A stretch of DNA of 64,000 nucleotides, taken from the NCBI GenBank assembly GCA_964187785.1, contig OZ076415.1, positions 6,882,001 through 6,946,000 of the forward strand, written 5' to 3'. Positions 3,001-36,300 of this stretch are shown piece after piece. The number at the start of each line of letters is the position of its first letter. The stretch's first letter is position 1. This DNA is from Amphiscolops sp. MND2022 (lineage: Eukaryota). Made by a program: the position numbers and the translations under genes. Under the pieces are notes generated by a model that worked only from the letters and a program-made list of their open reading frames with translations, did no database searches and was not told the origin of the DNA.

Positions 3001-3081
3001 ACCCGTGTCTGTTCAGTAAAAACAGCTTACGGAACATTCGAACGACCCGCCGTTTCTCTTTCTCGCGTTTTCGCCCCGTGA
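1..3081 (+). mobile_element. BEL/Pao LTR retrotransposon pol region (RT, RNase H, integrase), frameshifted, 5'-truncated by the window edge
   Basis: RT motifs WYLPTYPV..PNKPGKIRRV, LLTGPDLL and ADIESMFMQI..LRFLW, with FYMDD at ~590. RNase H motifs LHVFTDAS, KSRVAP..SVPKLELEAA and FWTDS (942-1868). Integrase H..HH..C..C, GIDLFGP, SDNGSNF and a Pao-type C-terminus GDIVWV..WPLGRIV (1741-3081). Split over several frames. Confidence 0.95.
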
Positions 3082-3134
3082 CGGCTCGCTCCGCAATTTC
3101 AAATTTGCCTCTCCTCCTCTCTTCTTTGCAGCTC

Positions 3135-3200
3135 GGGGGGTGGAGCATGTCACTGACGTGATTCATCAAATGAAATACTTGACTCTTAATGTTTTCATGA
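3135..3200 (+). mobile_element. Polypurine tract and start of the 3' LTR of the BEL/Pao element (LTR end not located)
   Basis: GGGGGGTGGAGCA (3135-3147) directly followed by TGT at 3148, 66 bp after the pol stop. Confidence 0.6.
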
Positions 3201-4426: not shown

Positions 4427-4651
4427 TGTGACACTGGTAACGACATGTGTCAATCCAGCAGATGCCAGCGAACAAACCTAATGAACTAAATGGCATAAAA
4501 CTACCAGTCAATGGCCTTATGTTGAAGTCATGTAACCACTATACATATATAACTTGTCTAGATATACTACAGTCGCGTTGATCCAAGCTAACTTACAATT
4601 GAGCTACTTTATTTTAATTCATTCTTAGAGCACCTTACTCTGTCTACTTTA
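4427..4651 (+). repeat. 5' LTR of Gypsy A
   Basis: TGTGAC...CTACTTTA, 96% identical to 25305-25529. Confidence 0.95.
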
Positions 4652-4665
4652 TGGCGCAGTCAGCA
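4652..4665 (+). promoter_or_regulatory. Primer binding site, probably tRNA-Ser
   Basis: TGGCGCAGTCAGCA immediately after the LTR, complementary to a tRNA 3' end ...GACUGCG-CCA typical of invertebrate tRNA-Ser. Confidence 0.75.
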
Positions 4666-4667
4666 TT

Positions 4668-7600: not shown

Positions 7601-9678
7601 ATCTCGACCAATCACATCGCGACAAAAACGTACGTGAACAAAATTCAAAAACTCATTTGTGCAAAACCTCAACGCCGTCAATTAGCATTAACGCCATAAA
7701 CCGCAAAGTACCAAATTCGAAAATGGACAAAGCTAATGGTTTCGATATGAATTTCAGATACAAGAAAAGAGGTCACTCCCCGGAAACCAAACGCTTATGG
7801 ATAGAGCGAAAGCACTTACTGAAGCCAGACCGGACACGAATTGTCGGAAAAGGAAAGGAGAGTGAGCGGATACAAAAATACCGGCCAAACCAAGCCAGCA
7901 GAAAGAGGATAGTAGAACTCAATGTCGAGATCTGCAACCGCTTCTTCCATTTCTGTGAAACAATTGGGACGACACCCTTGTTGGAGTACCAACAGAATAA
8001 CAATGAATCCTGGCTACACAACAACCAGCCGGACTAAACAAGAAAAATGCTTTGAAGAAGTTTAAGAAACACGAAACCGTGAACTTGATCAGACTTAAGC
8101 AGACGGCGAAGAAAAACTTGCTCAGTGCAGATCAAAATGACAACACCGAAGATGCCATCAAAAGAGTGGAAAAGGATTTCGCGCTAGATCTTCCCCTCCT
8201 CGTAGATGAAACAGCGCGAGACATAAAAATACTCAACGCAATTGCTGCCATTGAAAACCAACAACTGGACAGCATATTTTATCCTTACCGTCAATATCGA
8301 GCACACCTGTCCACAAGATTCGGGCTGTTGTTCTACAACGACAAGATAATGATTCCAGAGAATATGCGGACAACATTAATCGCTATGTTGCATCACGGAC
8401 ACGCGTCGGCCGGATAGATGGAACAATTAACAGGAGCCTTCTGGTGGCCAGGAATGAACCGCAAGGTTCAGGAGAAGGCCGAATTATGCCCAAGCTGTAG
8501 GGCTGCAGGTAAGAACATTATCACTCAAATCCCGTCCACGGAGAAAAATAACCTAGAGATTTTAACCGAACCGAACCAAGAAATTCAATTGGACTTCGCC
8601 GGTCCAATCAAATCGAAAACACAAGGCGATGTATATATTTTAGTAGCCATTGACCGTTTTAGCAAATGGCCGACCGCACACAGTTGTAAAAGCACCGTCC
8701 TAAAATTTTTAACGAAATATTTTACCGACAACGGAACGCCACGGAATATTGGAACCGATAACGGCAGTTGTATTAAAAGTAACGAATTTAACCAATTTTG
8801 CGACGGTCAAAATATTAAACGTATAAGGTGCACGCCAAATTTACACACCGGTACCGGTTTAGTCGAACGAGCCATACGGACAATTAAATCATTTACTAGA
8901 GCAAACATGGCAGACGGCCTAACCTTTGAAGATAGCGTCCGATTAGCGATTAAAACAATTAGACAGACGCCACACAGCAGATTGAAAACGACACCTTTTC
9001 AGATGCATATAGGCAGAAAGCCGCGCACAGCTCTAACTAATCTGATAGATAAGCCAGAAAGTTTGCTATCTAATTGGAAGAAGACATTAGTTATATTTCA
9101 GCCCAACCGACAGAACTTCAAGTAGTCATCATAAATGATGCAGAAGGAGAGATGGTGGACTACTTGGTCCTCAACGAAACAAAGAAAAAAGGCCGTTCGG
9201 TAAGCCGGGATTTTAAAAATTACTAGTTCTACGAAAAGGAAAACAAACCGAACTCTATGAAATGTGGTTTTAAAACAAATAAAATTTTAACAAGGGGTAG
9301 CTGAAACAGGACACACAATAACCACTTCCGAAGGGAAGGTAATACATAAAAAATTAGCATCAAGGCCCCTGAATTTTCAGACATCAAAAAAGCCCCAGGA
9401 TCAGCGAAGACCAACAAACAGGTGCAGCAGATGTGGGAAATTCAGTAGCGGCGAATTATGTGAAACACATCTACGTCTCGAGGCCACTAATCAAGATGAC
9501 AACAATAATGAACCAGGCACCAGCCACACCACCATGCCGACCTTGCCAGCGAAAAAGAAACGGGCGTACAACCGTGTGGTGATGTACGACTCTTCTAGCC
9601 GTGATTCGGAATCAACAAGCAACTACGCCGACAGAGCTACCTCAGAAGAGGAAGATGCCACCGATGACATCACCATTA
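4668..9678 (+). pseudogene. Gypsy A gag-pol, decayed (Zn knuckles, aspartic protease, RT, RNase H, integrase)
   Basis: CRFCG..HIC..CNNCKKMGHFAKVC; IDTGSPVT; IDLDYAYSQ; WLDDII; TTDACNTGLGA..ELE; QLDFAGP, TDNGS. Many stops and frameshifts. Confidence 0.93.
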
Positions 9679-9719
9679 CAGTGCCAAAAGTGGGTTAACA
9701 CACTTTTGTGCTATTAAGT

Positions 9720-10105
9720 CACCGAAATCCACTGACATACTTTTAAACATGTATTTCACTGATTTTCATTGGATTCCGCTGTTGCCTGTTTTGGATTCCA
9801 CTAACATATCTAGCTAATGTACAAAAATGTGTGCACCGAAATCCACTGCTTTTCACTGCCAACTGATTGGACCAATCGCGTCAGCTTATTTCAACTTTCA
9901 GCGAAATTCGCTGAAACTTGCAGTGGATTCCACTTCAGCTTACAGTGGATTCCACTTTGGCTTACAGTCGATTCCACTTTGGCCTACAGCCGATTCCACT
10001 TTTCAACTTGTGGAATTGACTGCGAAACGAGTGGAATTGACTGTAAGCGAAAGTTGAATTCACTGTAAGCTGAAGTGGAATCCACTGCAAGTTTCAGCGA
10101 AAGGA
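9720..10105. repeat. E1 left subterminal region: GTGGAWTCCAC palindromic motifs and a fold-back
   Basis: Many (CA)GTGGATTCCAC(TG) variants. Arms ttcgctgaaacttgcagtggattccacttcagcttacagtg (~9907) and its reverse complement ending at ~10100. Confidence 0.8.
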
Positions 10106-10254
10106 CAGATCAGTGAAACATAAATATAAAATTTCTAATAATCTTCTTGCATTTTTCATGCTGAAACCTTTTGGCCGTTTAGTTTTGTCCCCCCTCCCCA
10201 CACCTGATTTAACAACTTATATATATTTATTATTATTATTAATTTGTTATGCAG

Positions 10255-12502
10255 GAACGGCTAGTTTCTGTTGGTTTAGGAGGTGGAAGCCTAGTACCGT
10301 CAATTCGTCACATCAAAAGAGCTACTAGCCTCATAATGAAATTGTTTGTTACAATTTGCGAGCCTGAGCGAACCTATTCTGGCTTTCGAGTCAGTTTACT
10401 GAAAGCAGTGACGTTTGCGTCATTAGTTTTACTGCAAAAAACCAATCTTGAAGGCCTTAAATTGATATTTGGGGTGACGGTTGCGAAATAGGGGGGGTGA
10501 GGTAACGCGTCTAGCATTCAGAATTTTGAACACCAAAGTTAGCAGCCAATCATCGAAAGCTGTCTTCTGTTTTGCATCATATCGTGGCAAAGATGGCCGA
10601 TATGCAATGGAACAAAATTTTGGCCTGTCTATCCTGGGTAAGCAAGAATCTGGATGGCTATACCGCCAGACAAAAGAACTACAAGCCTTGGGCGTTGAAA
10701 TTACATACAGTGGTGACAGCCCGTTCTTGACGCGTTTGGTCCTTGGAATTTCAACTGAACGTTCAAGTTCTCATCCGTCACAACTTCCGATATATGTATG
10801 CGATGAAAATTTCATCCCCACCCGCTGCTCAGATGTCGATGGAAGACGAACATCTTTGAAGATCCCATTCAGACAACATGTTCCTAGAGAAGCATTAGCA
10901 AGCATAATCGATGTCAGAACAATCTGCCCAGACGCTACACACATGATAACGCGTTGCACGGAGAATGATATTAGAAAAGTGGCTCAGAAGGTAATTGACG
11001 ACAAACATCCCTGGGAAACTTTGAGCATACAGCGCTTTGAGAAAAATTTGACCAGCCGAGAAGCTAAAAGACCGTCTTTTCAGTTCAATATCACCCACAA
11101 GAACGTAGGTAAAACCCCAGGAACAGTAGGACCACTGTCATTAGCGGGGTCGAATGCACTTACAGTTATAACCGAAACAGAAGAACTTAGAAGTGCTCAA
11201 TTTGGGACCATCACGAACCTTTATGACGGAGTTTGGACGACCGAGATACTACTTGGAAGAGAGGATGGATACAACTTGGGGGCTGCAAAAGTACTTAAGT
11301 CTTTATATCCACATTTATTTGACAAACGAGACCCCATAAATCCAAGAAACGAAGAAAGATATATATCAATTTATGACGCTTGTGAGCTTCTACGACAAAG
11401 TTTAAACCAGTGTGCTATTCTGTTGAGAACTCAGGGAACATTTGATGTCGACACTTACAAACGATGGGCTGAAACATACTTTCAAATCAATTTGCTCCTC
11501 TTCGGGCGAAAGGGGCTGTCACCATACAAGCTCAAGCTTCCATTGATAGCCCAACTAGTGGAGAGCGGATACATCGAGAAGCCATGGAATCACCTCTGCG
11601 AAGGCTTGGAAAAATCGAACCACAATGCGAACAGAAATTTTCAATCCCGAACCATGAGAGGCGGTGGCTCCATTTACCATCAAGATCCATTATTTCTGGA
11701 TACTGCATTTTCGTTTTGCCGGTTCCTGGATATTTCTTCAACAAGTTCCGAAAAAAAAATATCCAATGTCATTGAACATGTAAGAAAAACACTCACGACT
11801 GAAGAGACTTTAGAGGGTGCCAAAACTTATCTAGACATTTGTAGAACTCCCTTGGCGCTACCCTGCCTTGCCGTTGGCGAAAAGAGAGAATTTTGCGACC
11901 TTCTACGAGGATTGAGATTTACAATTGTAGGTAGGTTCAAGCGTGGGCTCACACAGGATTTCCTCAAAGATAGAATTTCCGAAATGGGAGGTGTCGTTTA
12001 TGAGAAAGAAAACGCGGAGAACATAATGAAATCCCATTCAAATATCTTGAATTTTTACGTTATTGTCAAAGACGAAGAGGACCTAATAAACGCGACCGGC
12101 GATAAACATCAATTGGAAGCCATGAGAAGAAAACTGAAGCTCCATAGACATTGTACCGCAAGCGAGTTGTCAACAGACGCCGAAAGCAGAGAAGATGAAA
12201 AGTGTTCAACAAAAAAGAATTTGTCTCCTGCAGCTTTGGCCTGCAAAAGATTTGCGTCGGGGGGTTTCATGTTCATCACTGTTGAATACGTACTCGAAAT
12301 GATGAAAAGTAACGTCATTCTGGACCCTGAAAATTATATTATAAGGCCTGGACTCTTGATCAACCCGATGAAAATTAATGACATGCGACCACTCTTGATG
12401 GATCAAATAGATGATAACAAATCAATAGCGAATACGTCAGCCATTGTGGCCTTGAAAAGATACCGAAACGGCCTAGTGAAACAACAAAACTCCAGCAGAT
12501 GA
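10255..12502 (+). CDS. RAG1/Transib-like DDE transposase with C-terminal BRCT domain (~750 aa after correcting two 1-bp homopolymer deletions)
   Basis: Reconstructed LKIDIWGDGCEIGG (D at 10476), TYSGDSPFL..LG (D at 10715), ICPDATHMITR, GLSPY..., CEGLEKSNH..F..RT.RGGG (E at 11609), matching RAG1 motifs GYDEK, IDALH and SEGNESGN. BRCT: GLRFTIVG..LKDRISEMGGVV ... ITVEYVLEMMKSNVILDPENYII. Frameshifts at 10459-61 and 10491-97. Confidence 0.75.
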
Positions 12503-12635
12503 TTGACTTTTACTCTGATTTCTGCAAATGCTTGTTACAATAAATGATTTTGAAGACATATGTTTTAATCTTTGCTTGTGGTACTAATTTAGCTTTTGAA
12601 CATTTTTTTCTCGGAAACTTAGACAAAAAATCTTA

Positions 12636-13220
12636 AGCATTTTACACCAAATCAAAAGGGGTACATTCAGTAAAGCATTAGTTCTAAATAGACTTTATTG
12701 CAGTGGATTCCACTATTCTGGAAAGTGTTCTTCATCCTGCGAAAAGCGATATGCGGAATTGACTAACATATACCAATACATTGACAGTGGATTCCACAAA
12801 CAAATGCTTAAACATTTGCAAACCAATACGAAAGGGGTACATTCATTAAGCATTAGTTCTAAATAGACTTTATTGCAGTGGATTCCACTATTCTGGAAAG
12901 TGTTCTTCATCCTGCGAAAAGCGATATGCGGAATTGACTAACATATACCAATACATTGACAGTGGATTCCACAAACAAATGCTTAAACATTTGCAAACCA
13001 ATTCAAAAGGGGTACATTCAGTGAATTATTAGTTCTAAATAGACTCAAGTTCCTATTGCAGTGGATTCCACTATTCTGGAAAGTATTCTTCATCCTGCGA
13101 AAAGCCATATGCGGAATTGACTAACATATACCAATACCTTGACAGTGGATTCCACAAACAAATGCTTAAACATTTGCAAACCAATTCAAAAGTGGTACAT
13201 TCAGTGAATTATTAGTATAT
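12636..13220 (+). repeat. Tandem array of a 175-183-bp unit (~3.3 copies)
   Basis: ggtacattc recurs at 12661, 12837, 13012 and 13195; each unit holds two CAGTGGATTCCAC motifs. Confidence 0.9.
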
Positions 13221-14120
13221 CCAGCAAAAAAAAATCAAATCAGGCTGCATTGAATAAAATTGACAATTAACTCCCTCATAGTCGTGACGAAAGAAATCTT
13301 GAACAAAGTTAATGATCAAAATCAACATACCGTATTTTCCAGCAAAGAAGCCACCTCCCCTTTTTTTGAATTTTTGGTGGTCAAAAGTTTGGGGAGGGGG
13401 CTTATACGATGAACATAAAACAAAGACCGTTTTTTTTCGGAATCAAAAATTTGGCATGATTTTAGAGGACAGTGCAGTTGATTTTTTTGAGGAAGTTTCA
13501 GAGCCTAAAGAAATGACAGATGATGACTCCACTTTTAGTCCGTGAGAATTGAAAATTGAATTTATACCAAGAAAGTTCATTCAATTGACTCTTATTGAAC
13601 TTTATTTTATTTTTTTTCCGAAGTGCATTTCCAAAAATTTTGGTAGGTTAAAATTTGAGTCATTTTGTCTTCTAGAAGGAGTTAGTCTCTTTCCGTTTTT
13701 CATTTTGCTTCAATAATTTGTTTACCATTCATTTGTTGAACACTATTCGTTCACTCAGCACAATTGGAATGAATCTGACGAAAGTGTCAATTTAGTAAAC
13801 TTGTGTGCAAATGAAGTGGTATAAAACAAAACTGTTACATAAGTTTACGGAACCGAGAATGCTTATTCGATTTTGATTGGCTGCCGAAGTGGATGTAGGA
13901 AATGTTCTTCTAGTTCAGGAAATTGATTCTTTGTCGTTCGACCTTTCAATTCAACAGCTTGCTAGTTTTGTTTAATTCAAGATACATTCTTTAAGCCTTC
14001 CTCTTACCTTTGTCTAATTCTAGATTCCCTATACGTTGCCTGCTACTTCATTCCACAATGGTTAGTTTCTTTCTTAAGAATGTTTTTCATCTCTAATTTG
14101 GGATACGAAATAAAAATTTC

Positions 14121-14575
14121 AGTTTCAGTTGGAAAAAAATTGAGTAACCACTGTGAGTATAAAAAAACAGTTTTAATATACACCGCTTTGGTTTTGGTAC
14201 TTACCAAGAGTAAGTTATTGTACTCGTTTTTGGTACCCACCGTGAGTAAAGTATTATCCTGCATTTGTATAGAAATTTTTTGTATCCACCGTGAGTAGTG
14301 GAAAAAACCTTGGTTAGAAACAAAATTTGTACACACTGTCAGCAAAAATGTTAGTTTCAGTTGGAAAAATTCGAGTATCCACCGTGAGCAAAAAAACTCA
14401 GTTTTAATAAACACCGCTTTGGTTTTGGTACTTACCTTGAGTAAATTATTGTACTCGTTTTTGGTACACACGGTGGGTAAAGTATTGTCCTGCATTTGTA
14501 TAGAAATTTTTTGTATCCACCGTGAGTAGTGGAAAAATCTGAGTTAGAAAAAAACTGTACACACTGTCAGCAAAA
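14121..14575 (+). repeat. Direct repeat, 2 x ~232 bp
   Basis: agtttcagttggaaaaa...cacactgtcagcaaaa starting at 14121 and 14353; rich in the motif tatccaccgtgag. Confidence 0.85.
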
Positions 14576-15224
14576 CTGCTCTTGAATTTTCATACGACGT
14601 TTTTGGTTTCCCCCGTGTAGTAAAAACAAATCTGAGTTTGAACTGCCATCTTCTTTGAACAGGCCTGAGTGAAAAACTGTTCACAATTTGCAGAGAAATC
14701 TGGGAGTGAAATATTGTTATCGATTTTGTGGGTCTTTTCTGCTACAACCCCTCCCCCCCTCCCAGCAAGTTTACTCCCATCCCACTCAATTCACTAAGAA
14801 GTGAATCAATATAAAGTCAATCTTATACAACAATTCTTGTCCTAATTTTTGAAATGTTGATAGGTGTTCATTATTGAGAAGTGAATCATTAGAGAGTGAG
14901 TCAAATACCTCGATTCTTATCCTGACAAAAAATATATTGGGGGTAATTTTTAAAGAATAGAGAGGGGGAAAACTATCTCGTTTTAAGGGAAAGCAATCCA
15001 TTACTCATGTCAAAGACCAATTTTTTTTGATACTCAACTGTTGTCAGATGAAATCAGAAAGCAATGATACGATATGAAGAAAAGATTAAAAGTTGTTGTT
15101 AACATAGACTATCAAACTAAATTTCGCGATAGCAAGATCAAAGTTTTTACATATTATTTGAAAAATTAGGTATACTCAGTTTTTCTGAGATAACATAGGC
15201 TGTAAAAAGTCCACTGTAAAAAGT

Positions 15225-15296
15225 CGACACGATAGAGATTCGAACCCACGATCTATGGCTTCATAGTCTAATTGCTTACCACTCGGCCATAGCGCG
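15225..15296 (-). pseudogene. tRNA-derived sequence (pseudo-tRNA or SINE head)
   Basis: A box TGGCCGAGTGG, B box GGTTCGAATC, tRNA-like spacing, followed by T runs. Anticodon and acceptor stems do not pair properly. Confidence 0.65.
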
Positions 15297-15558
15297 TTGT
15301 TATTTGTTTGTTTTTATTTAACCATATTGTTAAACAACCGAGATAATTATCTCCATTTTAAAATGATGGCGTTCTAAATTCATTTGTGGTTTGGCATGTT
15401 CTGTTTTTTTTCGCTTGTTCGTTTCCTTTTTTTCTGATTGGAAAAACAGGTCTTTATTTGAAATGGGAGGTTGTAAAATCTTTTAGCGGTTTGAAATTTT
15501 GGCGTGTACAAGTAAGACGCTTCGAGGATAAACTATAATGTTGTTTTTGTTTCTACAG

Positions 15559-18526
15559 ACTGAATACAGCTGCCCCAACTGTTCGTACAAGTCGAACCGC
15601 CGCACGAATTTTGAGAGGCACCAAAAAACCTGCGGTACAAAGCAGCCGCAAAACAAAGCCTGTCCCCGTTGCAAGAGAGTCTTCGCCACCCTTGTAACGC
15701 TCAAGCGGCACATCAAAAAAGCGAGGTACTGCACGACAGACATACCCCAAAATGAACGAAAGTACAGTAAGTACATCAACTATGTCAACGACTTGCGGCT
15801 CTTTTTGTTCCCCCCACCACATTTTTCATGAAAAAATAGTGAAAAACTTATATCACAAAGACGTGAATACAAACCAGAAAGCCTCAAATTTATATTTATT
15901 TTTAGTGTGACAGTTTAGGATTTAGATACAAATAATTACGAACATAATACAAACATAATACGAACATAAGTATTGTCTGCAAGTTTTATATAATCTGCGT
16001 TCGTTAGTTTACATTTTATTCAGTAAAATTTTATAGGAACTGCCAACCCCAGCAAGAAATATCCTTGCACATCATGTAGTGAGGAATTTGCCCGGAGTGA
16101 CTCCCTGCAGAGACACCTGGAACGATTTCCCCTCCACAAAGAAAGCGACATGGCAATGACGAGCGAGCCTAGTCGACGGGCGTACGAAGGGTCAAGTCTC
16201 TTCGTAAAGTACCTAGAGGACATGCCGCTATCAGAGGAGCCCTGGAACTGCTGCAGGTGGGCAAATCAGCAGGAAGATGAAAACGGCATGGTCCTGAAAG
16301 CACTCTCTCGTGGCCAGCCGATTTTGTGGAAGAACGGGGCTATGCACACGCGAGGTTTGAAGCTCCCAGTTTTGCCCGCTGAGGACTTCGTCCACCAAGT
16401 GGAGTTCTTGCTGCAGCACTTGGCTAATCCTGCAGCGAAGCTTGCTGTAAAGTCATCACGGCTGCCACAAGACCAACAGGTGAACATATCCCGCCATTCT
16501 TTGTATTTTTCGAATTTCACAAACTTCATTCAAGTATAGCGTTTTACCATTAGTGATAAAATTTATTGTATACATTGAATCAAAACATAGTGAGCTTTAG
16601 TATCCACTAAGTCGTCGTTGGCAGTGGATTTCACTGTAAGTTATCTAAACATTGGTAAAGTAATTTCAAAGGATTATGATTGAAATATATTTTTCTGAAC
16701 TTTAGGTCAGGTCTTTAACAGTGAGAGAGTACCTGGATGAGCAGCGAGCGGGGCCCTCAGTAGCACCCACGGGAACATTTCCTGTCAATGTCATTGACAT
16801 TGCACTCGAACGGAATGTATGTTTTTTTATCATATCTTGAAAGGGCTCATATTGGAAAAAATTACTCTTTGAATTTGGTGTCTTTACAGTGCCAAAAGTT
16901 AGTGAAATACATGATGCACCCTTCTATTGTTCAAATTTTTAGCAACTAAATGGATGTTGAAAATGGCGACCACTGTAAGGAGTCTTTGTTCTGAAACCGT
17001 TTGCTGAGGTCTTGTCGTTTTGGTTTAGTTTTTCCAAGTACCGGATTTCGTCAGACACTGTGCGGCCGATCATCTGGCAGATGAGTGTGTGGATGCAGCA
17101 GGGCACTTCACCGAGGCTACATCCAATTATTTGCTGGTCTCAAACGACCAGTGTCTCACGCCGTGGCATGTCGACTTCTCCAGCACGACTGCCTTCTATA
17201 CTGTCGCCCGAGGACAGAAGATCTTCTGGCTGGTGGAGCGACAAGCTCAAATTTGCAGCTCTTTGAGGAGTGGAGCAATATCCCCACAAAAAGGTAAATG
17301 TACTCAGATCATGTACTGAAAACATACTCATCTCAAAGTCATCATTTTGCGAAGAGCACATTATCAATCATGCACATGATTCAAAATCATTGAACCAGTT
17401 GTTTCGTTTATATTTATACTAATTTGTTTTTATTTAGACCAACTTCCTTCGGGAACCTGAAGGCGCTGACAGGTGGGGTCCACAAACTTGTGGTGGAAGC
17501 AGGCGACATCCTCGTTTTGCCTGCACGCTGGCCACATATAGTGGCAACAAAGGGAGACGCCATTGCTTTTGCCTCCAACATCCTCGCTGTCACACATTTC
17601 CCTCTGATTGTGGACAGTCACCTCCACGCCAGTCAGCAGGAAATAGACGACGAAGAGGTTTTTCCCGGAGTTGTTCGTGTGTATGCTGTGCTACAGTTTA
17701 AAATACGACAACTCCAGCGAAAACTCAATTCCCTGAGCGGAACATGGAGCCCCCTCTTCTCCAGCCCACAACTGACTCTTCTGAAAGAGCAGATCAGCAG
17801 TGAGCTCGACGCCATCAAAATGGTAATCAATGTTTGTTAATTATGAATGGTAACTGATAATGTAGAAAAAAGAACTAATCTCTTCCACGGTCTGGGATGT
17901 GAACTACGGATTTTAATGGTTCTCGTTTCGAACTGCCTAACAATGTAAACGTATTTTTTCAAATGTAATTGTAATTTTGCACTTTTCTCATTGAATTCGC
18001 TCTATTTTATCATTGTCAATGGCTTTTGTTACCAGGTGTATCCAGCGTTCAATTTAAAGCAAATGGGATTGAGGGGTCCGGAGAAGCCCTATTGCGACCC
18101 AAAAGGGCCAGTGTACGCCTTCACAGGGACTGTGAAGGAAGTCCGAATTGGGCCTACACACCAGGTTGAAATCCCCGAAATGTCACAGAAGGGAAAGAAA
18201 TATGACCGCAGCATCCTTCAAAAGGAGGAGGACGTCTTCGATATAGGTTAGGAGCTGCAATTGTTGATGTCATAATTTTCGAAATCTTGATATTAAACCT
18301 TACATAGATATTTGACCACTAGTCTATAGGAAAACCTTGAAATTGCATCTGTTGAAAAAAAATCACAAACCCCATCGTTATGATCTGTTTAGACACCCTG
18401 CCGCCTCTCATTGCAAACTGCGACACTTTCAAAGAGTTTTTGAGCAAGAAAATTGCTCTCTACAAGCTGGCTTTTGCAACGAGCCTACATTGCAAAAGAA
18501 GCCTCGAGAAAAATTCACTATGGTGA
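15559..18526 (+). CDS. Multi-exon C2H2 zinc finger + JmjC (KDM2/KDM7-like) + ELM2-like protein; start codon not located
   Basis: GT-AG exons 15559-15766 (2 ZnF), 16037-16479 (ZnF), 16706-~16815 (FPVNVID), ~17039-17293 (TPWHVDFSSTTAFY..RGQKIFWLV), 17438-17822 (LPARWPHIV, third Fe ligand His), 18036-18246 (VRIGPTHQVEIP) and 18393-18526 (IALYKLA). Phases are compatible except across 16815-17039. Two 1-bp deletions at 16750-52 and 17239. Confidence 0.8.
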
Positions 18527-18627
18527 ATAAAGAAGCTGCCTGGAGCAAACTTTTATAGTTCATTATTTTTTTATCAAACTCTTTAGTTTAGAATTGAACA
18601 GAATTTAGTTTAGAATTTACTCCTTTA

Positions 18628-19255
18628 TATTGGTTTGCAAATGTTCGAGCATTTGTTTGTAGAAATCACTTTTAATGGATTGAAATACGTCTGTCGATTC
18701 CGCATATCGCTTTTCGCAGGATGAAGAATTTTTTCTAGAATAATGGAATCCACTGCAATAGAAACTTGAGTCTATTTAGAACTAATAATTTACTGAATGT
18801 ACCCCTTTTGGATTGGTTTGCAAATGCTTAAGAATTTGTTCGTGGAATCCACTGTCAATGTATTGGTATATGTTAGTCAATTCCGCATATCGCTTTTCGC
18901 AGGATGAAGAATACTTTCCAGAATAGTGGAATCCACTGCAATAGAAACTTGAGTCTATTTAGAACTAATAATTCACTGAATGTACCCCTTTTGAATTGGT
19001 TTGCAAATGTTTAAGCATTTGTTTGTGGAATCCACTGTCAATGTATTGGTATATGTTAGTCAATTCCGCATATCGCTTTTCGCAGGATGAAGAACACTTT
19101 CCAGAATAGTGGAATCCACTGCAATATAAACTTGGGTCTATTTAGAACTAGTAATTCACTGATGTACCCCTTTTGTATTGGTTTGCAAATGTTTAAGCAT
19201 TTGTTTGTGGAATCCACTGTCAATGTATTGGTATACGTTAGTCAAATCCACTTAC
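18628..19255 (-). repeat. Inverted copy of the 175-183-bp tandem array (~3.4 copies)
   Basis: gtacccc at 18799, 18982 and 19164; reverse complement of the 12636-13220 units. Confidence 0.9.
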
Positions 19256-19651
19256 TGTTTCTGGCTAGATGCATTTAGGTTTAGTAGAACGTTTGTACCA
19301 TAAATCTGAATGTGCAAAAACCAAAGTAACAAAGCATTATTACGTATCGGGAACAGTTCTGAATAATAATTTGAAATTATCTACTGGGGAGAATTTTTCA
19401 AGAAAGTAGTCGCAAGTGAAAAAAGTTTTTTGACATCATTTATTGTAACAAAGACAAAATTACTGTAACAATCGAATTAAGAAAAAGAACTTTATCAGTG
19501 CAATACCAACAAAAATACCATTCAATTTATTTAGGGTAACAAAACAGACGCATTTTGAAGATGTATTTGCACATTTACTCACGGTGGATACCAAAATTGC
19601 TACCCCTATTGGTCAACAAAGTATTCAATGTGCGCATGTTGAATGTTTTGC

Positions 19652-20902
19652 CTAAAGCGTTGTCGATGGTCTCCATTTTTTGTAGTGGCCTTCAGTTGTA
19701 GTTATGTGGCACCTGAATGAGAACATCATAAAGTCACGATGTTCCGTGAATTTCAAAGTCTTGATCAATGTTGCAGGCTCATCTTCAAGTGTATCTGGAA
19801 TGATGTCCCAGTTCTGGCCCAATATAAAATCTAAGCTGTTGTAGCTTCCCAAGTTTCCCGTTTCAACTTCTATTGAAAATTTCACGTTTTCTCTGCTTGA
19901 GTCCGACTTGAACCCACAGATACGTTTTGTGAGCTCTGTTGCAGGTATCATGTTTGTCACAGTTGATGATTTCTTGAACGACAAGCCAACACATCTCTTA
20001 ATTGCAGAAAAGACTGCAAACGTTCTATCAACATCATTATCAAGAGTGAAAAAATTGATTTCCACGTTTTTTAAATATTCCGAGATCTTTAACGAACAAT
20101 TGTTTACTGGCATCCTAAGTTCGCAGTCTTCGTCGTCCATGGATACCATTATTGCAAAAGGTTTCAACTTCTGTGCACTGTAGTACAAATCCTTCACTTT
20201 GAATTCCATTCCAGACAAAGTAATAATGGATCCTCTTTGACAAATTCCATTGACACATGGTACAAAGCTTAATTTGACATCAACATCGGTTTGCGGTATC
20301 AATGCTGAAAAGTCTATTTCTGGTATTTGTGTTTTAGGTCTTTTCTGTTTTGGTTCCTGCCTCGTCTCTTCAGCTTCCTCGTCGTCTTCTGCTTTCTCAT
20401 CGTGAACATGGGTTTCTTCCACTGAGTTCTTCAAATAGCAATAGGGGATAAATCTAAACATTTCGTCCACCTCCACGACACACTCATGGGTAAATGGGTC
20501 ATTCGTCGAAATAGTTCCCGTTTTGATTTTTCTATGGGAATCAATAAAACAATGCCCCACACACTCACAATCGGGTAGCCAGAATGTCACATGCTCGTTT
20601 TTTTGCAGTCGGTTTGGGTTATACGACAGGGGTTTAGAACGCTTTTTCGACATGACTGGTTGTGAATGTCGTGCTTTTCTAATGTTCCACCTGTTTGGGT
20701 CAGGACGCAATTCTAGGGGAATTTCAATTTTCTGCAGACGATTGTTCCAGTCGATCCATTGGATTTTCAGAGACCAATCACTTATGAACGCTATTATCTT
20801 CGCAGACTCCCAAATATAGGTTTCAGGGTCGAGGATTTGGACAGTTTCATTTATTTTAAAAGTTTGCAGAAGCATTGTAGTGGAGACTAAATTTGACTTC
20901 AA
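19652..20902 (-). CDS. 416-aa intronless protein with N-terminal Tudor/Royal-family-like domain(s)
   Basis: Uninterrupted ORF. INETVQILDPETYIWESAKII..SLKIQWIDW resembles a Tudor/Agenet barrel with aromatic-cage residues; possible second barrel (EHVTFW..KTGTI..CVVEVD). C-terminal half unassigned. Confidence 0.6.
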   Translation of the reverse strand: MKSNLVSTTMLLQTFKINETVQILDPETYIWESAKIIAFISDWSLKIQWIDWNNRLQKIEIPLELRPDPNRWNIRKARHSQPVMSKKRSKPLSYNPNRLQKNEHVTFWLPDCECVGHCFIDSHRKIKTGTISTNDPFTHECVVEVDEMFRFIPYCYLKNSVEETHVHDEKAEDDEEAEETRQEPKQKRPKTQIPEIDFSALIPQTDVDVKLSFVPCVNGICQRGSIITLSGMEFKVKDLYYSAQKLKPFAIMVSMDDEDCELRMPVNNCSLKISEYLKNVEINFFTLDNDVDRTFAVFSAIKRCVGLSFKKSSTVTNMIPATELTKRICGFKSDSSRENVKFSIEVETGNLGSYNSLDFILGQNWDIIPDTLEDEPATLIKTLKFTEHRDFMMFSFRCHITTTEGHYKKWRPSTTL

Positions 20903-21299
20903 CAGAAAGAAACACTTGAGCTTACTCTGTGCATAAACTGTTCAAATTTGTGCAAAGTGATTACCAGGTGTCAACGCATAAACTGCGCGAAAAAGAGGCT
21001 AATTTTACGGTGATGATCCTAAAAGAAGGTGTCATTCCATTTTGAGCGCTCAATAAAAGAAATTATCACTAGCAATTAGTTTTTAAACTCATCTCGTGAG
21101 TGTTAATATCTTTGAATAGGCAATTGAGTCCCGAAAGGACTCAACCACCGTAATAAACCTGATAACACTTACTGGTTGAAATTATTAATTTAGTCACTGT
21201 GAAATGCAATGGGTGAAATCGAGTCTCTGCTAATTATGAAAACGACGATTTATCGAAAAAATTAATTACAAAATTGTCATTTCTTTTTACATCATAATT

Positions 21300-23282
21300 T
21301 TGATTCACTCAGCGAAATCCACCGTCAAGATTTGTACTCCTAGTTTCATGAATACTTCTAGCATGCCTGACAAAATTTCAAATCTCGAATCGACACACTT
21401 GTGTCCATCCCAGACTTTTACACCTGTGCAACAGTCACATCGACGATCTACCGACTGGAATGTGCCGCCAGATTTCCTCAGCAATACATCCATATTTTGT
21501 CCGCCATCTTATTCGCCAATTCCATCGGCCCCCGAGGAGGGTTTCTTCAGTGCAACTAGAATGATGAACTCTGATGGGATCGAGCACTTGATTGAACATA
21601 CGCCCACAGACGCTCTAGAACATTTACTGCAGAATGCTCACAATCTGACTCATATTCCTTTGCCGCCTGAGAACCCACTACAACAGGACCCCCCGTCACA
21701 GAATTCACTGCCTCACCAGAACTTGCCACCCCAGAGCAATGTGCCCGGGACCAATGCGTCACCCCAGCTCAATGAGCCACCCGGGAAGCGTCCATTTGAC
21801 TCCCAGTGCAGTGAGGATAATTTAAGTAACAGCCAATCCAAATGTGCGAAAGTTACTTACTTTGACAACAACATGTACGAAAGAACGTTGGCTAAACATG
21901 TGCAGGCATCGAAAGAAAATGTGGGACTAGTACAAAAAGCTAAGTTGGAACTCTTTCGATGCATAATTACAACCCTGTTCAAGTTTGCGGTACCACCTAT
22001 GCTTGAAAGTTCCATCCGAAATGTCTCGGTACACTCAGTTGTGCAAATCGTGATGGATCACGAAGAAGATTCACTGAGCGACGCTTTCAATCTCTGTGTG
22101 GAACACACAATTGGATCATCGGAACGAACAGTTCACAAAGTATCCGGAAGTCTTGTTGAAGCATTGAAAGTATATTTTACACAAATTCGGCCATTTTTTG
22201 TTACCAATCACGCCAAGTTAGCCATTGTTCGATACGAAAAGGCCGACAAACGTCCAATTAATACAGAGTTATTCTTCGTGAATTCAATTGGTAAAACGGA
22301 CTTCCGCGTTAAATCTGTTGTAGATCTTTTCATTTCAAGCAAAAAAGCAGAAACAAAAGATCAATATACATTGAAAGGTAAAGTCGCGGAACTGATGCCC
22401 CTTTCCAATGACCCATGCTTCAAAATCGCCAAGCTGAAACATGCAGTGAATTTGGTTCTTTCGAATGTTGAAGGTTTCGACAAAGACGTTGTGAGAAACG
22501 CTGTTCGCGGCCGCCAAGACCAGCAAAGGTACACTCGCCAGTCAGCCAGGGCCTTGCTATACTTTGAACACGTTTCTGGGAAAGTTGCTATTAACTGTCT
22601 TGAGTCAAGAGCGGCGGCATTTTTTCAGCGACAAAAGTGGACTTCGCTGAAGGATAAGAACCAGGACGTGAAAAAAGTGACAGCGCAGTTATTGATTCTC
22701 TCTAACAACCAGTCAATTAGAAAATCTTCGCAGGTACCTGAGAACAGTGGAATTCGGTATGCTGGACTTGCTCATAATTTGCCATATGAAGAACAAATTT
22801 TGCTGTCGCAACGATGTGAGACGCAGCTGTGGCCTGGAATCTGCTTAGCCAAAATGTCAAAATTTGGGAGATGTGTGATTGCTACACAGAAATTTTCAAA
22901 AGACGACATTTTGATGGATTATCATGGCGAGGTGTCTTTGAACATGTCATTGAGCCAAGTCCTCGAGAAAGAAGGCGTGGAGCAAGAGTTCGTTCTGGAG
23001 GTTAAAAGTGGCGCCTCTAGAAGAATCATTGATGCCTCCAAAGAGATTTGCCCCCTTCACCCAAATATTCGCTGCCCTGGACGTCTTGCCAACCACTCGC
23101 AGTTGAAATCAAACGGCGCCAACATGAAGCCCACAGTGATCGAATTGTTTCAAAATGGCAAAAAGATTGTAGTGTTCCGAGCTACACGTGATATTCTACC
23201 ATTTGAGCAGCTCCGTTTTGATTACAATGACCCCATTGCCAATCAACTTTTCCAGGAAGATTCTCAACCAATTTTTGACTGA
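21300..23282 (+). CDS. 660-aa intronless protein: P/S/Q-rich N-terminus, degenerate tyrosine-recombinase-like domain, C-terminal PR-Set7/KMT5A-like SET domain
   Basis: SET: FGRCVIATQKFSKDDILMDYHG..IIDAS..GRLANHS..FRATRDILPFEQLRFDY. Middle region follows the YR motif order (LKVYFTQIRP, LFFVNSIGK, KLKHAV, QQRY) without the catalytic R/K/H residues. Confidence 0.8.
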   Translation: MIHSAKSTVKICTPSFMNTSSMPDKISNLESTHLCPSQTFTPVQQSHRRSTDWNVPPDFLSNTSIFCPPSYSPIPSAPEEGFFSATRMMNSDGIEHLIEHTPTDALEHLLQNAHNLTHIPLPPENPLQQDPPSQNSLPHQNLPPQSNVPGTNASPQLNEPPGKRPFDSQCSEDNLSNSQSKCAKVTYFDNNMYERTLAKHVQASKENVGLVQKAKLELFRCIITTLFKFAVPPMLESSIRNVSVHSVVQIVMDHEEDSLSDAFNLCVEHTIGSSERTVHKVSGSLVEALKVYFTQIRPFFVTNHAKLAIVRYEKADKRPINTELFFVNSIGKTDFRVKSVVDLFISSKKAETKDQYTLKGKVAELMPLSNDPCFKIAKLKHAVNLVLSNVEGFDKDVVRNAVRGRQDQQRYTRQSARALLYFEHVSGKVAINCLESRAAAFFQRQKWTSLKDKNQDVKKVTAQLLILSNNQSIRKSSQVPENSGIRYAGLAHNLPYEEQILLSQRCETQLWPGICLAKMSKFGRCVIATQKFSKDDILMDYHGEVSLNMSLSQVLEKEGVEQEFVLEVKSGASRRIIDASKEICPLHPNIRCPGRLANHSQLKSNGANMKPTVIELFQNGKKIVVFRATRDILPFEQLRFDYNDPIANQLFQEDSQPIFD

Positions 23283-23785
23283 TGGAATCGTCAGAAAACT
23301 CCGTTTACGAAACACTTTTTGTTGTTGTGTATTCAATTTTTCACTACTTTCGTTTTAATTTCACTTGTAATTAAACACTGATTGCTACAAGTACAAATGT
23401 TCGTTTTTCGTAATATCGAAACAAAACACCGTAAATAACGTCTTTCCCTTGCAACGTCTTCTTCACTCGAATTTAGATTTCCATTCATCATTCGACTTGT
23501 AATTCAATTTGAAATTTTGGTATCCGCCTTGAGGTATTTGAAAAATGGAAACTAGTTGTACCTAAAATACACTAAAATACACGAAAGAGCTGTGTGTGAA
23601 CTTTGATGTAGAATTGATAAGGTCTCCGTTGCAGTCAGCAGTATGCTTGAAGTGAGTTTTCCGGAACCAAATTTTGGTATCCACCATGAGGTAAATGAAA
23701 AATGAAAGCTAGTTATTTCTAAAGGTATGTGTGTATAACTAGGTAACTAGCAGGAACTGGGTGTGAAATTTTGATGCCCACTATG

Positions 23786-24520
23786 ATTCAGTGAAATAAT
23801 TCAGTGAAATAATTCAGTGAAATAATTCAGTGAAATAATTCAGTGAAATAATTCAATGAATTCCACCAAAACAATTGAAATAACTCAGTGAATTCAGGTA
23901 TTGAAAAAATTAGGTGAAATAATTAGGTGAAATAATTCAGTGAAATAATTCAGTGAAATAATTCAGTGAAATAATTCAGTGAATTCTACCAAAACATTTG
24001 AAATAACTCAGTGAATTCAGGTATTGAAAAAATTAGGTGAAATAATTAGGTGCAATAATTCAGTGAAATAATTCAGTGAAATAATTCAGTGAAAAAATTC
24101 AGTGAATTCTACCAAAACATTTGGAATAACTCAGTGAATTCAGGTATTGAAAAAATTAGGTGAAATATTTAGGTGAAATAATTCAGTGAAATAATTCAGT
24201 GAAATAATTCAGTGAAATAATTCAGTGAATTCTACCAAAACATTTGAAATAACTCAGTGAATTCAGGTATTGAAATAAAAAACTGAAATAATTAGGTGAA
24301 ATTATTCAGTGAAATAATTCAGTGAAATAATTCAGTGAAATAATTCAGTGAATTCTACCAAAACACTGCATTGGAAATAATTTTGTGAAATAATTCAGTG
24401 AATTCAGGTATTCAAATAATTCAGTGAAATAATTCAATGAAATAATTCAGTGAAATAATTCAGTGAATTCCACTAAAACACTGCAGTGGAAATAATTAGG
24501 TGAAATAATTCAGTGAATTC
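23786..24520 (+). repeat. 13-bp minisatellite (TTCAGTGAAATAA)n with higher-order ~115-bp blocks, E1 right subterminal region
   Basis: Dozens of direct copies, periodically interrupted by ttctaccaaaacatttgaaataactcagtgaattcaggtattg. Confidence 0.95.
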
Positions 24521-24830
24521 CACTAAAACACTGCAGTGGAGTCCACTGCAGCTGATAGTGGATTCCACAGCGGCTATCGGTGGAGTCCACTGCGGCCATC
24601 GGTGGAGTCCACTGCAGCGTTCAGTGGAATCCACAGCAGTGTTTTGTGGAATCCACTGCAAGATCCGAATGTTTAAGGTATTTGATAGTGGAATCCAATG
24701 CTTTGCAGCGAAATTCGCTGCAGAAAAATCGCCAAAAGAGTGGAATCGACTGCAACGTAATAGCATTTGTTAGTGGATTACGCTGCACGCTTTCCAAAAC
24801 TGCCGTCCAGCGAAATCCACTGCAAAAATT
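24521..24830. repeat. E1 right subterminal CAGTGGA(A/G)TCCACTG palindromes
   Basis: Repeated cagtggagtccactg / gtggaatccac motifs mirroring the left subterminal region. Confidence 0.8.
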
Positions 24831-24853
24831 CAAAATACCCACTTTTGGCACTG

Positions 24854-25176
24854 TAATGACACTGGAGGCCATGATCGGACAGGAAGTAGAGCGGATACGG
24901 TCGCAAACGCCGATGCTGACCTCTTCAATCGGCTGCAGCACTGAAATACCACAGGCCGCCGACGCGACACAACCGGACGCACTCGAAACGCCGATCCGCA
25001 GCCAAAGCACTTCAAACACTGAGGCAATAGACCATGACCACGCAGGTAAAGCACGGTTAAAACAAACCTTTAGCGATGAAAGTAGCTCACTAGATTTAAA
25101 TCAGGAGCCACGTAGATCCGAAAGGATAAGATCTGCAAAAAGAGTAGTTAAATTAGGCGGTGTCGAATACTTCTAA
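24854..25176 (+). pseudogene. C-terminal tail of Gypsy A pol, resuming after E1
   Basis: MTLEAMIGQEVERIR...EPRRSERIRSAKRVVKLGGVEYF*, in frame with the sequence before 9677; PPT AGAGGAGGGAA at 25294-25304. Confidence 0.85.
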
Positions 25177-32985: not shown

Positions 32986-33369
32986 CACACTCAGACTAAC
33001 GGATACTAGTTAACTAACTTTTTTGAATTTTGTTTTGGCAACTATCAGATACATTGACAAGAGGATGCGATTCCTAGGTACTTCCTAGGTACTGCATTCA
33101 TGTGTGTGGATAATTTAGCTGAAAAAAATTCAAAAAATTCAAAATATCAAAATTGTTTGTGTTCTTTTTTAAAAAACATCAAATTTTCAACTAATCAACC
33201 CCCGAAATTACCCATCGAGAAAAGAATTTTATCAGTTATCTTCTCTCATGACATACCACGAAATCCACCCCAAGATTTTAAATCCCCCGCTAGTTCATAG
33301 AAAAATATCCTTGAATTAAATAATGGTAGCAACCTATTACTTTCGATTGTTTTTCAATGTACTATCTAC

Positions 33370-36300
33370 TATATATTATCTACTCTTTTTAGCAATCAGG
33401 AAAACCCAAACAATCCCAGGTCTGATAGGAATGACAGCACTGTGTCCTCCCAAAATGAAAGTAGATTTTTCCGTGTTGGGAAACAATGGGAGGAAAAAGA
33501 CTGAACGGGTAATGCTGGTCCCCGTGTCCGCTATCAACCATGCATGCCAACCAAATGCCGAATTTATAAATCATGGCGAATTGTCAACAACCGCCTTGGA
33601 AGTTAAGACAACTCGACCCCTCAAAAAGGGGGAAGAAATAACGTTGTCCTATGGCGAAGACTTTTTCGGTGCTGGCAACAAGGATTGTGGTTGCAATGAT
33701 TGCAAGGAAGAACAACTCGAATCAGAACCTACCATACAGATTCGAGAGCCAGAGAACGAACTACCAACCTCGGAAATTCAAGAGACACAGAAGGAACCAG
33801 CAACCTCGGAAATTCAAGAGACACAGAAGGAACCAGCAACCTCGCCAATTCAAGAGACATAGATCGAACCAGCAACCTCGCAACTTCAAGAGCCAGAGAA
33901 CGAAGCAGCAACCTTGCAAACTCAAGAGCCAGAGAACGAAGCAGCAAGTTTGCAAAGTCAAGAGACAGAGAACGAAGCAGCAACCTTGCAAACTGAAGAG
34001 CCAGAGAACGATGCAGCAACCTTGCAAAGTCAAGAGCCAGAGAACGAAGCAGCAACCTTGCAAACTCAAGAGCCAGAGAAAGAATCGAATGTTGAGCTAG
34101 AAGAGCCAGTTTATACGAAGGTGCTACCAGTGAACCGTGATTTAATGGATTTTCTGGATTCACAGGACCTCGCTGATTTTTCGGACGTTAATTTCGCGGA
34201 AATGTCAGCGATTGCTTACTACACCCCAATGCAACCTTTTCAGTTTCAGCAACTCCCTTATATGCATCTTTGCCCCTCTTACATGGAAAACATGAATTAC
34301 ACGCCACAATATCCACAACATATCACTTACATGCCACCGTTTCATCCCCCGATGCCACCTCAACCATTAATACAACAACATCCTCAACCCACCAATTCAA
34401 CTCCGCGTTCTGCTCCGAAAATGCTGGAAGATCCTAATCCTGGCCAAAAGTCTACCAATTGCAGAGTATTCATTGATCAAACTAGATGAGCATATAGAAT
34501 GCCTAATTTGCCATAAAGTTGTCAAACGAATGGACAAGCACCTCGAAAGTCATTACCTAGAGAAAAGAAAATTAAGTATAACATGGATTTGTTTCGGACG
34601 AAAGAATCTGGCAGAAAAACAGTATGGAACTGTGAAGTATGCTCCGAAGATTCGCAAGTAAAAAACCTCATAGAACAACATGTATTGCTACATTACAAGA
34701 AATTGAAAATCCCTCCAGTAGAAAATCTCTCCCCCAGAGCATCCGCGACAAATGCAAAACGAAAATTCTCGCTCGGGAAGAGGACGTTCAAGTGGTGGAA
34801 CGACTCATGAAGCAGCAACAGGTTCTGGCGGATATGTCAGAAAAAGGGCCCCGAACAGTCAGTTGCTGCCAAAATTCAAATTTGCACTCTGTTATTCAAC
34901 GAAACAAAGAAACTGACAGATGCCAAAGCCCTTGTGGAGTCAGCCCGCAGAATTCAGATGAGAAAGTCATTGAAGCCCCAATCCATGCTGATTTATCTAG
35001 CAACATTCAGACATTTCGTGGAATATTGCTTCATGTATGAGGATGGAGTGTGCTCCCAAAACAATAACCACCACATGATGATGAATGCTGCAATGCGGCA
35101 GGTACATTTTCTTGAAATTTCAAAAGTTCAGCTCTATACAATCCATACTCATTAGAAAAAAAATAAATTATAGAAATCTTTTAGTGAGAAGGTCAGGCGA
35201 TGAAAGAATTGAACCAACTATTTTTTGATGTTTGTCAGGCATAGGAGTAATGTTGTCGAATGAAGGAATTGAATCAACTAATTTTTGAAGTTTGACACGC
35301 AAAATAGAACCGATTTTGAAAGATTTTTTGATCCAACGCGCAAGAGATGTTATCGAGCGTTGTAAAAACACTAACTAATAACTGACGTTCGTCCCGGTGA
35401 AGAGATGTTCTTGAATGATGAAAATAAAAATCTAGGAAAAAAACAAGTTGGGCAGAAAAATGTTTTGTTTCTGACTAAGAAAGCATTCAGAAGCGCTGCT
35501 GCTCGGGACTACAAGAAAGTAGTAAAACAGCTGAGAGCTTTGGTCCCTAGCACGGAATTGATCAGCGAAAGGATGCGAGGGACACTTGAAATCCTGAATA
35601 AATCTTGAAAGAAAACAGTCTATCGTACAAAATACAACAGGCCCTGAACTTCTTCCTCTTACAAGGCAGACTCAGACTCAACGTAAGAGCCGGACCAATC
35701 CTCACCCTAACTTGAGAGGATTTCAAATGGATTTAGGAAAACGGTGCCCCCTTTACAAACCGATAAACATAAGACAGGGTCGTACTATACAGTATACATT
35801 CAAATTGAAAAGGACCAGCGGGAGTTCCTGAAACGCCAGGAAGAAGCTTTTGTGCGGGAGGTGGGAGATCAACCTAACTTCATCTTGGCCTCGCAAAATA
35901 ATAAAGAAGAGAGGTCCATTTGCCGGCATTTGCGCGAGGTTATTTTTCGACTTGTTTTTATCTACACAAAAGAAAAATATCATTACTGCTGAGTCTTGAA
36001 TTTCAATCCATTTTTCCAGGTCTTCTTCACTCTGTTCATGACGATCCCAGTGCTGTGCGATTCAATGCAAACTCTATCAGAAAATATTGGGAACGTCGTT
36101 GGAAAGTTATTGGAAAGGACTCTGGGGACGGCGTAATGAAAGCACATTATGCCCAAACTGCGCATTCGGCAAAAACAGATCTTTACATTGGATGAGAAGG
36201 CACAGAGTCGGAACGTGCATGCCTTCTTTCAATGTACGCAAACGGTTTGGCCTTGAGACCAGGATGCCAGGAAGAACCTGCAATGGAAGAGCCTGAAGAG

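Follow-up and report, generated by a model that had tools for sequence, protein, structure and literature searches.

Epigenetic enzymes are already known from fungal and oomycete DNA transposons, which include TET/JBP genes and the SET genes of the Phytophthora HarbingerS and MuDR families (cited in PMC12730594). Catalytically dead recombinase domains are likewise known from host genes: DUF3504, a Crypton-derived tyrosine recombinase (YR) domain, occurs in ZMYM2-4, QRICH1, KCTD1, KIAA1958 and WOC, with proposed roles in DNA binding or multimerisation (PMC3212892). The CMCT clade of transposons (EnSpm, Mirage, Chapaev, Transib) has 5'-CA..TG-3' termini and target-site duplications (TSDs) of 2-5 bp (PMC12730594). 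The stretch analysed here, 64,000 nucleotides of contig OZ076415.1 of Amphiscolops sp. MND2022 (assembly GCA_964187785.1, positions 6,882,001 to 6,946,000, forward strand; hereafter the window), contains a RAG1/Transib-like transposon whose gene at 21300-23282 encodes a protein with a SET domain at its C terminus. We consider this focal gene to be, more likely than not, a functional accessory gene of the transposon, combining a SET8-like domain with a YR-derived, non-catalytic central domain. New here is a RAG1/Transib-like element, probably in an animal genome, that keeps a SET8-like methyltransferase joined to a possibly recombinase-derived domain across divergent members. Literature searches returned no account of a Transib/CMC element with a SET gene, nor of a Crypton with SET.

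The focal gene and its two conserved domains are placed as follows:

21300-23282, + strand: focal open reading frame (ORF), 660 codons, 644 from the first ATG at 21348 (mechanical ORF rule)
21852-22718, + strand: central conserved alpha/beta domain, residues ~185-473, delimited from a 90-representative family, an AlphaFold2 (AF2) model and the ratio of nonsynonymous to synonymous substitution rates (dN/dS)
22866-23228, + strand: SET domain, KMT5A/SETD8-like, placed by Pfam PF00856, PDB alignments and motif coordinates

The frame is open for 660 residues, as an earlier note on this DNA had claimed, and its start codon at 21348 coincides with the start of the homologues P0002 and P0003. The encoded protein comprises a proline/glutamine-rich N-terminus, which lies outside the AF2 model and is probably disordered, the conserved central domain and the C-terminal SET domain.

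PF00856 is the sole Pfam domain in the focal ORF, covering residues 523-643 (E 4.5e-9; 37.1 bits against a cut-off of 22.4). The closest solved SET sequences in a PDB search are 4ldg (1.4e-7) and then many KMT5A/SETD8 entries (1e-4 to 1e-3), in agreement with the PR-Set7-like assignment that the earlier note had made. Alignments to 4ldg and SETD8 are collinear over the entire SET domain, and residue alignments reveal that the cofactor and catalytic motifs GRC (GxG-like), DYHG (YHG), NHS and FDY are kept. The domain therefore shares with KMT5A/SETD8/PR-Set7, the histone H4 lysine 20 (H4K20) monomethyltransferase, both its collinear layout and its cofactor and catalytic motifs, whereas overall similarity is low and the N-terminal architecture of the focal protein is wholly unlike. 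From sequence, the focal SET domain looks catalytically competent and is predicted to be an active methyltransferase, with H4K20 the substrate expected purely by family resemblance. The Phe/Tyr-switch position preceding DY is occupied by Phe (FDY) and by Trp in some relatives; Phe at this position would permit higher methylation states, as in SET8 mutants.

The focal gene lies within an element bounded by terminal inverted repeats (TIRs):

9674-24858, unstranded: transposon, 15.2 kb here and ~17 kb when complete, bounded by TIRs
9674-9695, + strand: left TIR, 22 bp, beginning CA, perfect reverse complement of 24837-24858
24837-24858, - strand: right TIR, ending TG, pairing perfectly with the left TIR

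The TIR 20-mer occurs three times in the window against an expectation of 0.03, and in the TIR the sequence ACAGTG lies only 4 nt from the tip. Homology with the copies L004, L003 and L002 begins and stops exactly at the TIRs, with flanks that differ between copies, and two contigs from a single metagenome assembly match the window collinearly, with 94-97% identity. Two independent copies carry an identical dinucleotide at both flanks (AC/AC in the window, TT/TT in the L004/L003 copy), and the target duplication appears to be 2 bp. No empty insertion site is present among the loci retrieved for comparison.

The element encodes its own transposase, which survives in the window as a remnant:

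10256-12502, + strand: transposase remnant (ORF 10481-12502, 673 codons, 5'-truncated)

The intact protein measures 764 residues (L004:7222-9513); ~1.9 kb of L004 (6071-7988) is missing from the window, identifying the window ORF as 5'-truncated, and the window copy is non-autonomous. An AlphaFold model of the 764-residue transposase is of moderate quality, with a predicted local distance difference test (pLDDT) score of 66 and a predicted template-modelling (pTM) score of 0.51. Foldseek nevertheless returns 47 matches at E <=1e-3 (best 1.2e-7), all to RAG1, HzTransib or the amphioxus RAG1-like protein BbRAGL; the same three account for the entire top 48, with Hermes and the P element next at ~5e-3. 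D326 is invariant and D410 conserved, both positioned on strands of the RNase-H-like core. At the sequence level, the transposase has no Pfam or PDB match, including to RAG1/Transib, apart from weak BRCT similarity at the C-terminus, where 3 of 26 members match Pfam BRCT (best 1.2e-4). The family is multicopy, with at least 34 members.

The TIR-bounded element and the RAG1/Transib-type fold of its transposase confirm the DDE-transposon context proposed in the earlier note and refine it. Its CA..TG termini and short duplication agree with the definition of the CMCT clade (PMC12730594). The strict hallmarks of Transib/RAGL elements, namely a 5-bp TSD, a heptamer-type TIR tip and RAG1-core sequence similarity, are absent, and the apparent 2-bp duplication together with the lack of RAG1 sequence similarity argues against Transib in the strict sense (PMC10629977). 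By eye, no C(2)C motif is seen in the 764-residue protein or in the family consensus, whose alignment is thin in the C-terminal half.

For the central domain of the focal protein, the AlphaFold model of residues 165-500 is confident (pLDDT 87.4, pTM 0.71). The chain opens with three helices, the third of them short, followed by a fourth helix and a beta hairpin; a long helix separates this hairpin from a second one, after which helices complete the domain. This order of secondary structure agrees with the YR catalytic domain. Counted from the printed lists, tyrosine recombinases and type IB topoisomerases make up 13 of the top 50 Foldseek matches in the PDB, led by the integrase of methicillin-resistant Staphylococcus aureus (MRSA), XerH (prob 0.85), XerA and topoisomerase IB. 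The BFVD list, counted in the same way, holds ~11 integrases/recombinases in its top 50, among them virophage and phage integrases at prob 0.82-0.87, plus one topoisomerase. A rough chance estimate is <1 such match in the PDB and ~1 in BFVD, and on the predicted structure we judge this enrichment unlikely to have arisen by chance.

Several results weigh against a recombinase origin. Structurally, the model has by our own reading an extra helix ahead of the hairpin and a single 30-residue helix where recombinases have two. No Foldseek match reaches E 1e-3 (best 0.21 in the PDB and 0.037 in BFVD), template-modelling (TM) scores stay at <=0.33 in the PDB and <=0.44 in BFVD, and root-mean-square deviations span 12-25 Å, where a canonical recombinase would be expected to score far better; any recombinase fold is therefore at best strongly remodelled. 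In Pfam, Phage_integrase and DUF3504 are absent from the matches of the central region at E <=10, and 22 family members show no recombinase family at E <=0.1; neither PHROGs nor NCBIfam gives an integrase family at E <=1 for 79 members. For this domain, searching the PDB with the protein alone, or with profiles of 4 and 79 sequences, gives only noise. The earlier note had the central ~250 residues following the motif order of the YR domains in two neighbouring genes, a claim that gains no statistical support from direct comparison: BLASTP of the focal protein against the two recombinase-like ORFs yields E 6.6-11, and when hhalign sets the 79-sequence family profile against the neighbour, taken either as one sequence or as a profile of seven, the probability stays <1%.

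A control YR profile of ten bacterial and phage members (XerC, XerD, FimB, FimE, IntA, IntD, IntE, IntS, lambda Int and Cre) recovers R148, K172, H244, R247 and Y279 as invariant. Against it, the focal family scores 13.4 by hhalign versus 14.3 for a reversed control, a further point on the negative side, and its probability against this profile or XerD is <=0.15%, at noise level. The positive control, the intact-looking recombinase of a neighbouring gene, reaches only E 0.009 against the same profile, so the test is insensitive and its negative outcome is weak evidence. The YR fold seen in the earlier note is only suggested: recombinases and topoisomerase IB dominate the top Foldseek ranks of the AlphaFold model, but none of these matches is significant and no sequence or profile method agrees. 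We regard recombinase ancestry of the central domain as plausible and unproven, at a little over one half.

The same data can be read, with appreciable doubt on our part, as describing a lineage-specific domain devoid of recombinase ancestry, in which case the structural matches would reflect a common beta hairpin packed on helices and the protein would still be a transposon SET methyltransferase joined to an unrelated targeting or regulatory domain. Sequence-level tests that are all negative or noise favour this account, as do Foldseek E values of 0.04-0.5 with low TM scores and the fact that a lone tyrosine is placeable among the canonical catalytic residues. It is opposed by the recombinase/topoisomerase counts in both top-50 lists, which exceed the rough chance estimate, and by the conserved residues of the family itself. 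An exhaustive profile search with residues 165-500 gathered 90 representatives, mostly fragments; the residues invariant in the family form the pattern R..h.vP...l..L..Y....RP.F followed by FFVNS.G. This pattern resembles the strand-helix-'LF' stretch that plays a structural part in Xer-type enzymes such as XerD, and not their active site, and hhalign chooses exactly that register. Its best registers, though non-significant, are collinear with a recombinase reading, placing focal positions 125-139 on XerD 189-203 and focal positions 217-249 on XerD 244-281, the latter setting Tyr411 on the catalytic Tyr279.

This tyrosine is nearly invariant in the focal family. The earlier note had reported substituted catalytic positions, and the strings it quoted are indeed found where it put them, MLESS at residues 234-238 (window 21999-22013), EHTIG at residues 268-272 (22101-22115) and KLKH at residues 378-381 (22431-22442); KLKH is variable within the focal family. 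Neither at fold-implied nor at hhalign-implied positions does the family conserve the canonical Arg-I, the Lys of the beta hairpin, His-x-x-Arg or His/Trp. An active, non-canonical recombinase or topoisomerase-like enzyme, built on Tyr411 with the invariant H245, R276, R297, R405 and R417 and working beside the DDE transposase, for instance by resolving intermediates of transposition or closing them into circles, could draw on the nearly invariant Tyr where hhalign sets the XerD nucleophile, on the several Arg and His residues invariant in the family and on the strong purifying selection described below. We hold it to be very improbable, given the unconserved catalytic positions just listed, TIRs and a target duplication of the kind that DDE transposition produces by itself, and invariant residues that, by our own reading, fall on elements structural rather than catalytic in Xer-type enzymes such as XerD.

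The probable role of the focal gene as a working component of the transposon, which we prefer, draws on its distribution and its selection. A word search recovered three focal relatives, two of them copies at 93-94% identity and one a gene at 67% identity, and the same central-domain-then-SET architecture recurs in four family members (P0018, P0040, P0055 and P0063). In three loci from other samples (L007, L008 and L018), a focal homologue with 26-47% identity lies within 1.5-5 kb of a transposase homologue with 42-48% identity, and in two of the three an ORF416 homologue stands head-to-head with the focal homologue, as in the window. Pairing of gene and transposase in divergent elements marks the focal gene as a conserved component of the transposon lineage. 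The earlier note had also supposed that a DDE transposase took over mobility from the YR; this finds no footing, as the four divergent elements all pair the gene with a RAG1/Transib-like transposase and no YR-driven stage is shown.

With the P0003 gene (67% identical) as the comparison, the central domain has a dN/dS of 0.23 (95% bootstrap confidence interval 0.15-0.31; dS ~0.8), SET one of 0.20 and the N-terminus one of 0.40. Among copies with 94-96% identity dN/dS rises to 0.5-0.8. Together with the low lineage values, this is the usual picture of a lineage held under selection while active, whose copies decay once inserted. The ORF is accordingly intact and selected, and the central domain does not evolve neutrally at the lineage level. 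A host gene taken up passively, or a passenger in decay that does nothing for the element, is a further alternative. In its favour, large DNA transposons frequently capture host gene fragments, copies L002 and L003 show a truncation and a frameshift, and the same element holds a JmjC/C2H2 gene that is itself perhaps a passenger. We find this alternative scarcely credible: the gene accompanies the transposase in four elements that share only 26-48% protein identity, its dN/dS is 0.2-0.23 over dS ~0.8, and its two-domain architecture recurs in P0018, P0040, P0055 and P0063.

Besides the transposase and the focal gene, the element contains arrays of a palindrome and two further genes:

9791-10085, unstranded: left subterminal palindrome cluster, 5 sites (GTGGAWTCCAC count)
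12627-13216, unstranded: internal array of ~175-183-bp tandem repeats with 6 palindrome sites, inverted relative to 18613-19271
15538-17840, + strand: C2H2 zinc finger and JmjC-like gene, multi-exon (pieces 15538-15828, 17089-17316 and 17424-17837)
18613-19271, unstranded: second internal array, 6 palindrome sites (inverted repeats I1-I16, 85-99% complementary to 12627-13216)
19652-20902, - strand: ORF416, divergent from the focal gene, with homologues adjoining focal homologues in L003, L007 and L018
23663-24540, unstranded: nested 13-nt / ~123-nt tandem repeats (direct repeat families D1-D3)
24463-24750, unstranded: right subterminal palindrome cluster, 10 sites, partly in a 22-nt register (repeat family D10, palindrome count)

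The window has 30 copies of the palindrome GTGGAWTCCAC where 1.2 would be expected. A single copy lies outside the element; the sites form four clusters that occupy both subterminal regions and the two internal inverted arrays. In the stretch separating the focal gene from the right subterminal palindromes, a 13-nt unit, GAAATAATTCAGT, is nested within the ~123-nt unit. Searched as separate exon pieces, the multi-exon gene matches Pfam zf-C2H2 (1.9e-8) and JmjC (0.064 for the N-terminal part of the model and 0.001 for the C-terminal part); its exons sit between the two inverted arrays that carry the element palindrome. In the middle of the JmjC region, at 16882-16901 (+ strand), lies a third, degenerate TIR-tip-like 20-nt site with 3 mismatches, perhaps left by a rearrangement or by an older end once nested here. 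A foreign transposon nested between the internal inverted arrays was set aside as a simple reading because these arrays carry the element's own palindrome, although the site at 16882 may allow for other histories. ORF416 has no Pfam or PDB match; its N-terminus is Tudor/chromo-barrel-like, by eye only.

In the account we prefer, a RAG1/Transib-like DDE transposase would mobilise a large cut-and-paste element. The focal protein of this element has a ~290-residue central alpha/beta domain specific to the transposon lineage and probably derived from the catalytic domain of a YR or topoisomerase IB by loss of its active site. The domain would serve without catalysis, through DNA or chromatin binding or through oligomerisation, much as has been proposed for DUF3504 (PMC3212892), and may guide the methyltransferase to the element (to the GTGGAWTCCAC arrays, for instance) or to sites of excision or insertion. 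The palindrome arrays are the natural candidate target, and ORF416 could equally be their binder. A comparable arrangement is known from the CACTA-type element En/Spm, where a second element-encoded protein of the TnpA type is thought to bind reiterated subterminal motifs; TnpA differs in having no sequence relationship to the focal protein, and ORF416 is an equally good candidate for such a role. More speculatively, the BRCT-like region of the transposase, the JmjC gene and the KMT5B-like SET of the neighbouring genes could point to a link with break repair.

A still broader proposal, which we think unlikely, holds that the element represents an undescribed RAG1/Transib-like lineage of animal transposons with a conserved chromatin module that writes or erases H4K20-type marks, steering repair or silencing. 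This module would consist of the SET8-like methyltransferase aimed by a dead recombinase fold, ORF416, the BRCT-tailed transposase and, in this family, the JmjC gene, and the marks would be set or removed at the element's own palindrome arrays or at self-made double-strand breaks. Such a module would resemble the alliance of RAG1 with RAG2, in which a transposase has a partner that interacts with chromatin.

Downstream of the element lie the two genes that combine a SET piece with a recombinase-like part and that served above for comparison:

33323-36195, + strand: SET and recombinase-like gene, with a KMT5B/SUV420H-like SET piece ahead of the recombinase-like part
40379-43635, - strand: SET and recombinase-like gene, diverged, in opposite orientation to 33323-36195

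In an exon-by-exon search, the neighbour SET piece is KMT5B/SUV420H-like (2.7e-10), against KMT5A-like in the focal gene, and it lies upstream of the recombinase-like part. Both the different SET family and the reversed domain order described in the earlier note are therefore borne out. The recombinase-like part displays the motifs R...HKTG...SIRK...GHS...Y and has no Pfam or PDB recombinase match, its sole recombinase support being the weak hhalign match to the ten-member YR profile, which falls in the correct register. Two independent SET-YR fusions, as previously suggested, follow only if the focal central domain is truly YR-derived. The SET types of the window are both H4K20 methyltransferase families, and the presence of the second of these, KMT5B-like, in the neighbouring genes makes a recurrent link between mobile DNA and the H4K20 mark worth testing.

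The plus-strand neighbour (33323-36195), possibly a pseudogene, needs frame changes to be read; its SET piece is followed at 33705-34000 by coding tandem repeats of 36 nt. In the minus-strand gene, the N-terminal ORF (42358-43635) contains an internal Ala/Pro/Ser/Asp-rich duplication of ~100-130 residues by eye. Retroelement remnants flank the transposon at 94-9125 and 24859-25176, of BEL/Pao type (peptidase A17, integrase, DUF5641) and Gypsy type (reverse transcriptase/RNase H, integrase). The transposon sits in the 3' portion of the Gypsy-type pol frame and breaks it up; beyond the right TIR, this frame continues. The window also includes a run of 140 N at 49561-49700.

Compared with the described systems, the focal protein shares with the SET genes of HarbingerS and MuDR and with SETMAR a lysine methyltransferase domain coupled to transposon machinery. 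The former belong to another transposon superfamily and another SET subfamily, and the present host, judged by the BEL/Pao and Gypsy neighbours, is probably an animal. SETMAR uses a DNA-binding module of transposon origin to aim SET at transposon ends, but SETMAR is a host gene, and the partner domain of the focal protein is not a DDE transposase. With DUF3504 proteins the focal family has in common a recombinase-like domain devoid of the catalytic tetrad (here on sub-threshold fold evidence), purifying selection and fusion to a chromatin or transcription domain. It differs in matching neither Pfam DUF3504 nor Phage_integrase, in residing in a multicopy transposon rather than at a host locus and in keeping a Tyr at the aligned nucleophile position, which DUF3504 genes have lost.

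The closest likeness in transposition machinery is to RAG1/Transib/RAGL and the CMCT clade, with which the element shares its transposase fold, CA..TG termini, short TSD and subterminal repeats (PMC12730594, PMC10629977). Transib and RAGL elements have a 5-bp TSD in place of the 2 bp found here, and no sequence-level match connects the two; the focal element, at 15-17 kb with three or four genes, also differs in size and content from RAG-like transposons. As in the RAG1L-RAG2L pair, a transposase travels with an accessory protein bearing a chromatin-related domain, which is a kelch-PHD reader in RAG2L and a predicted methyltransferase, hence a writer, here. The element thus seems to carry its own chromatin-marking protein. 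If the protein targets chromatin, whether at the element or at its breaks, it would offer a tractable case of a transposon manipulating histone marks and, beside RAG2, a second model for how RAG1-type transposases gained chromatin-linked partners.

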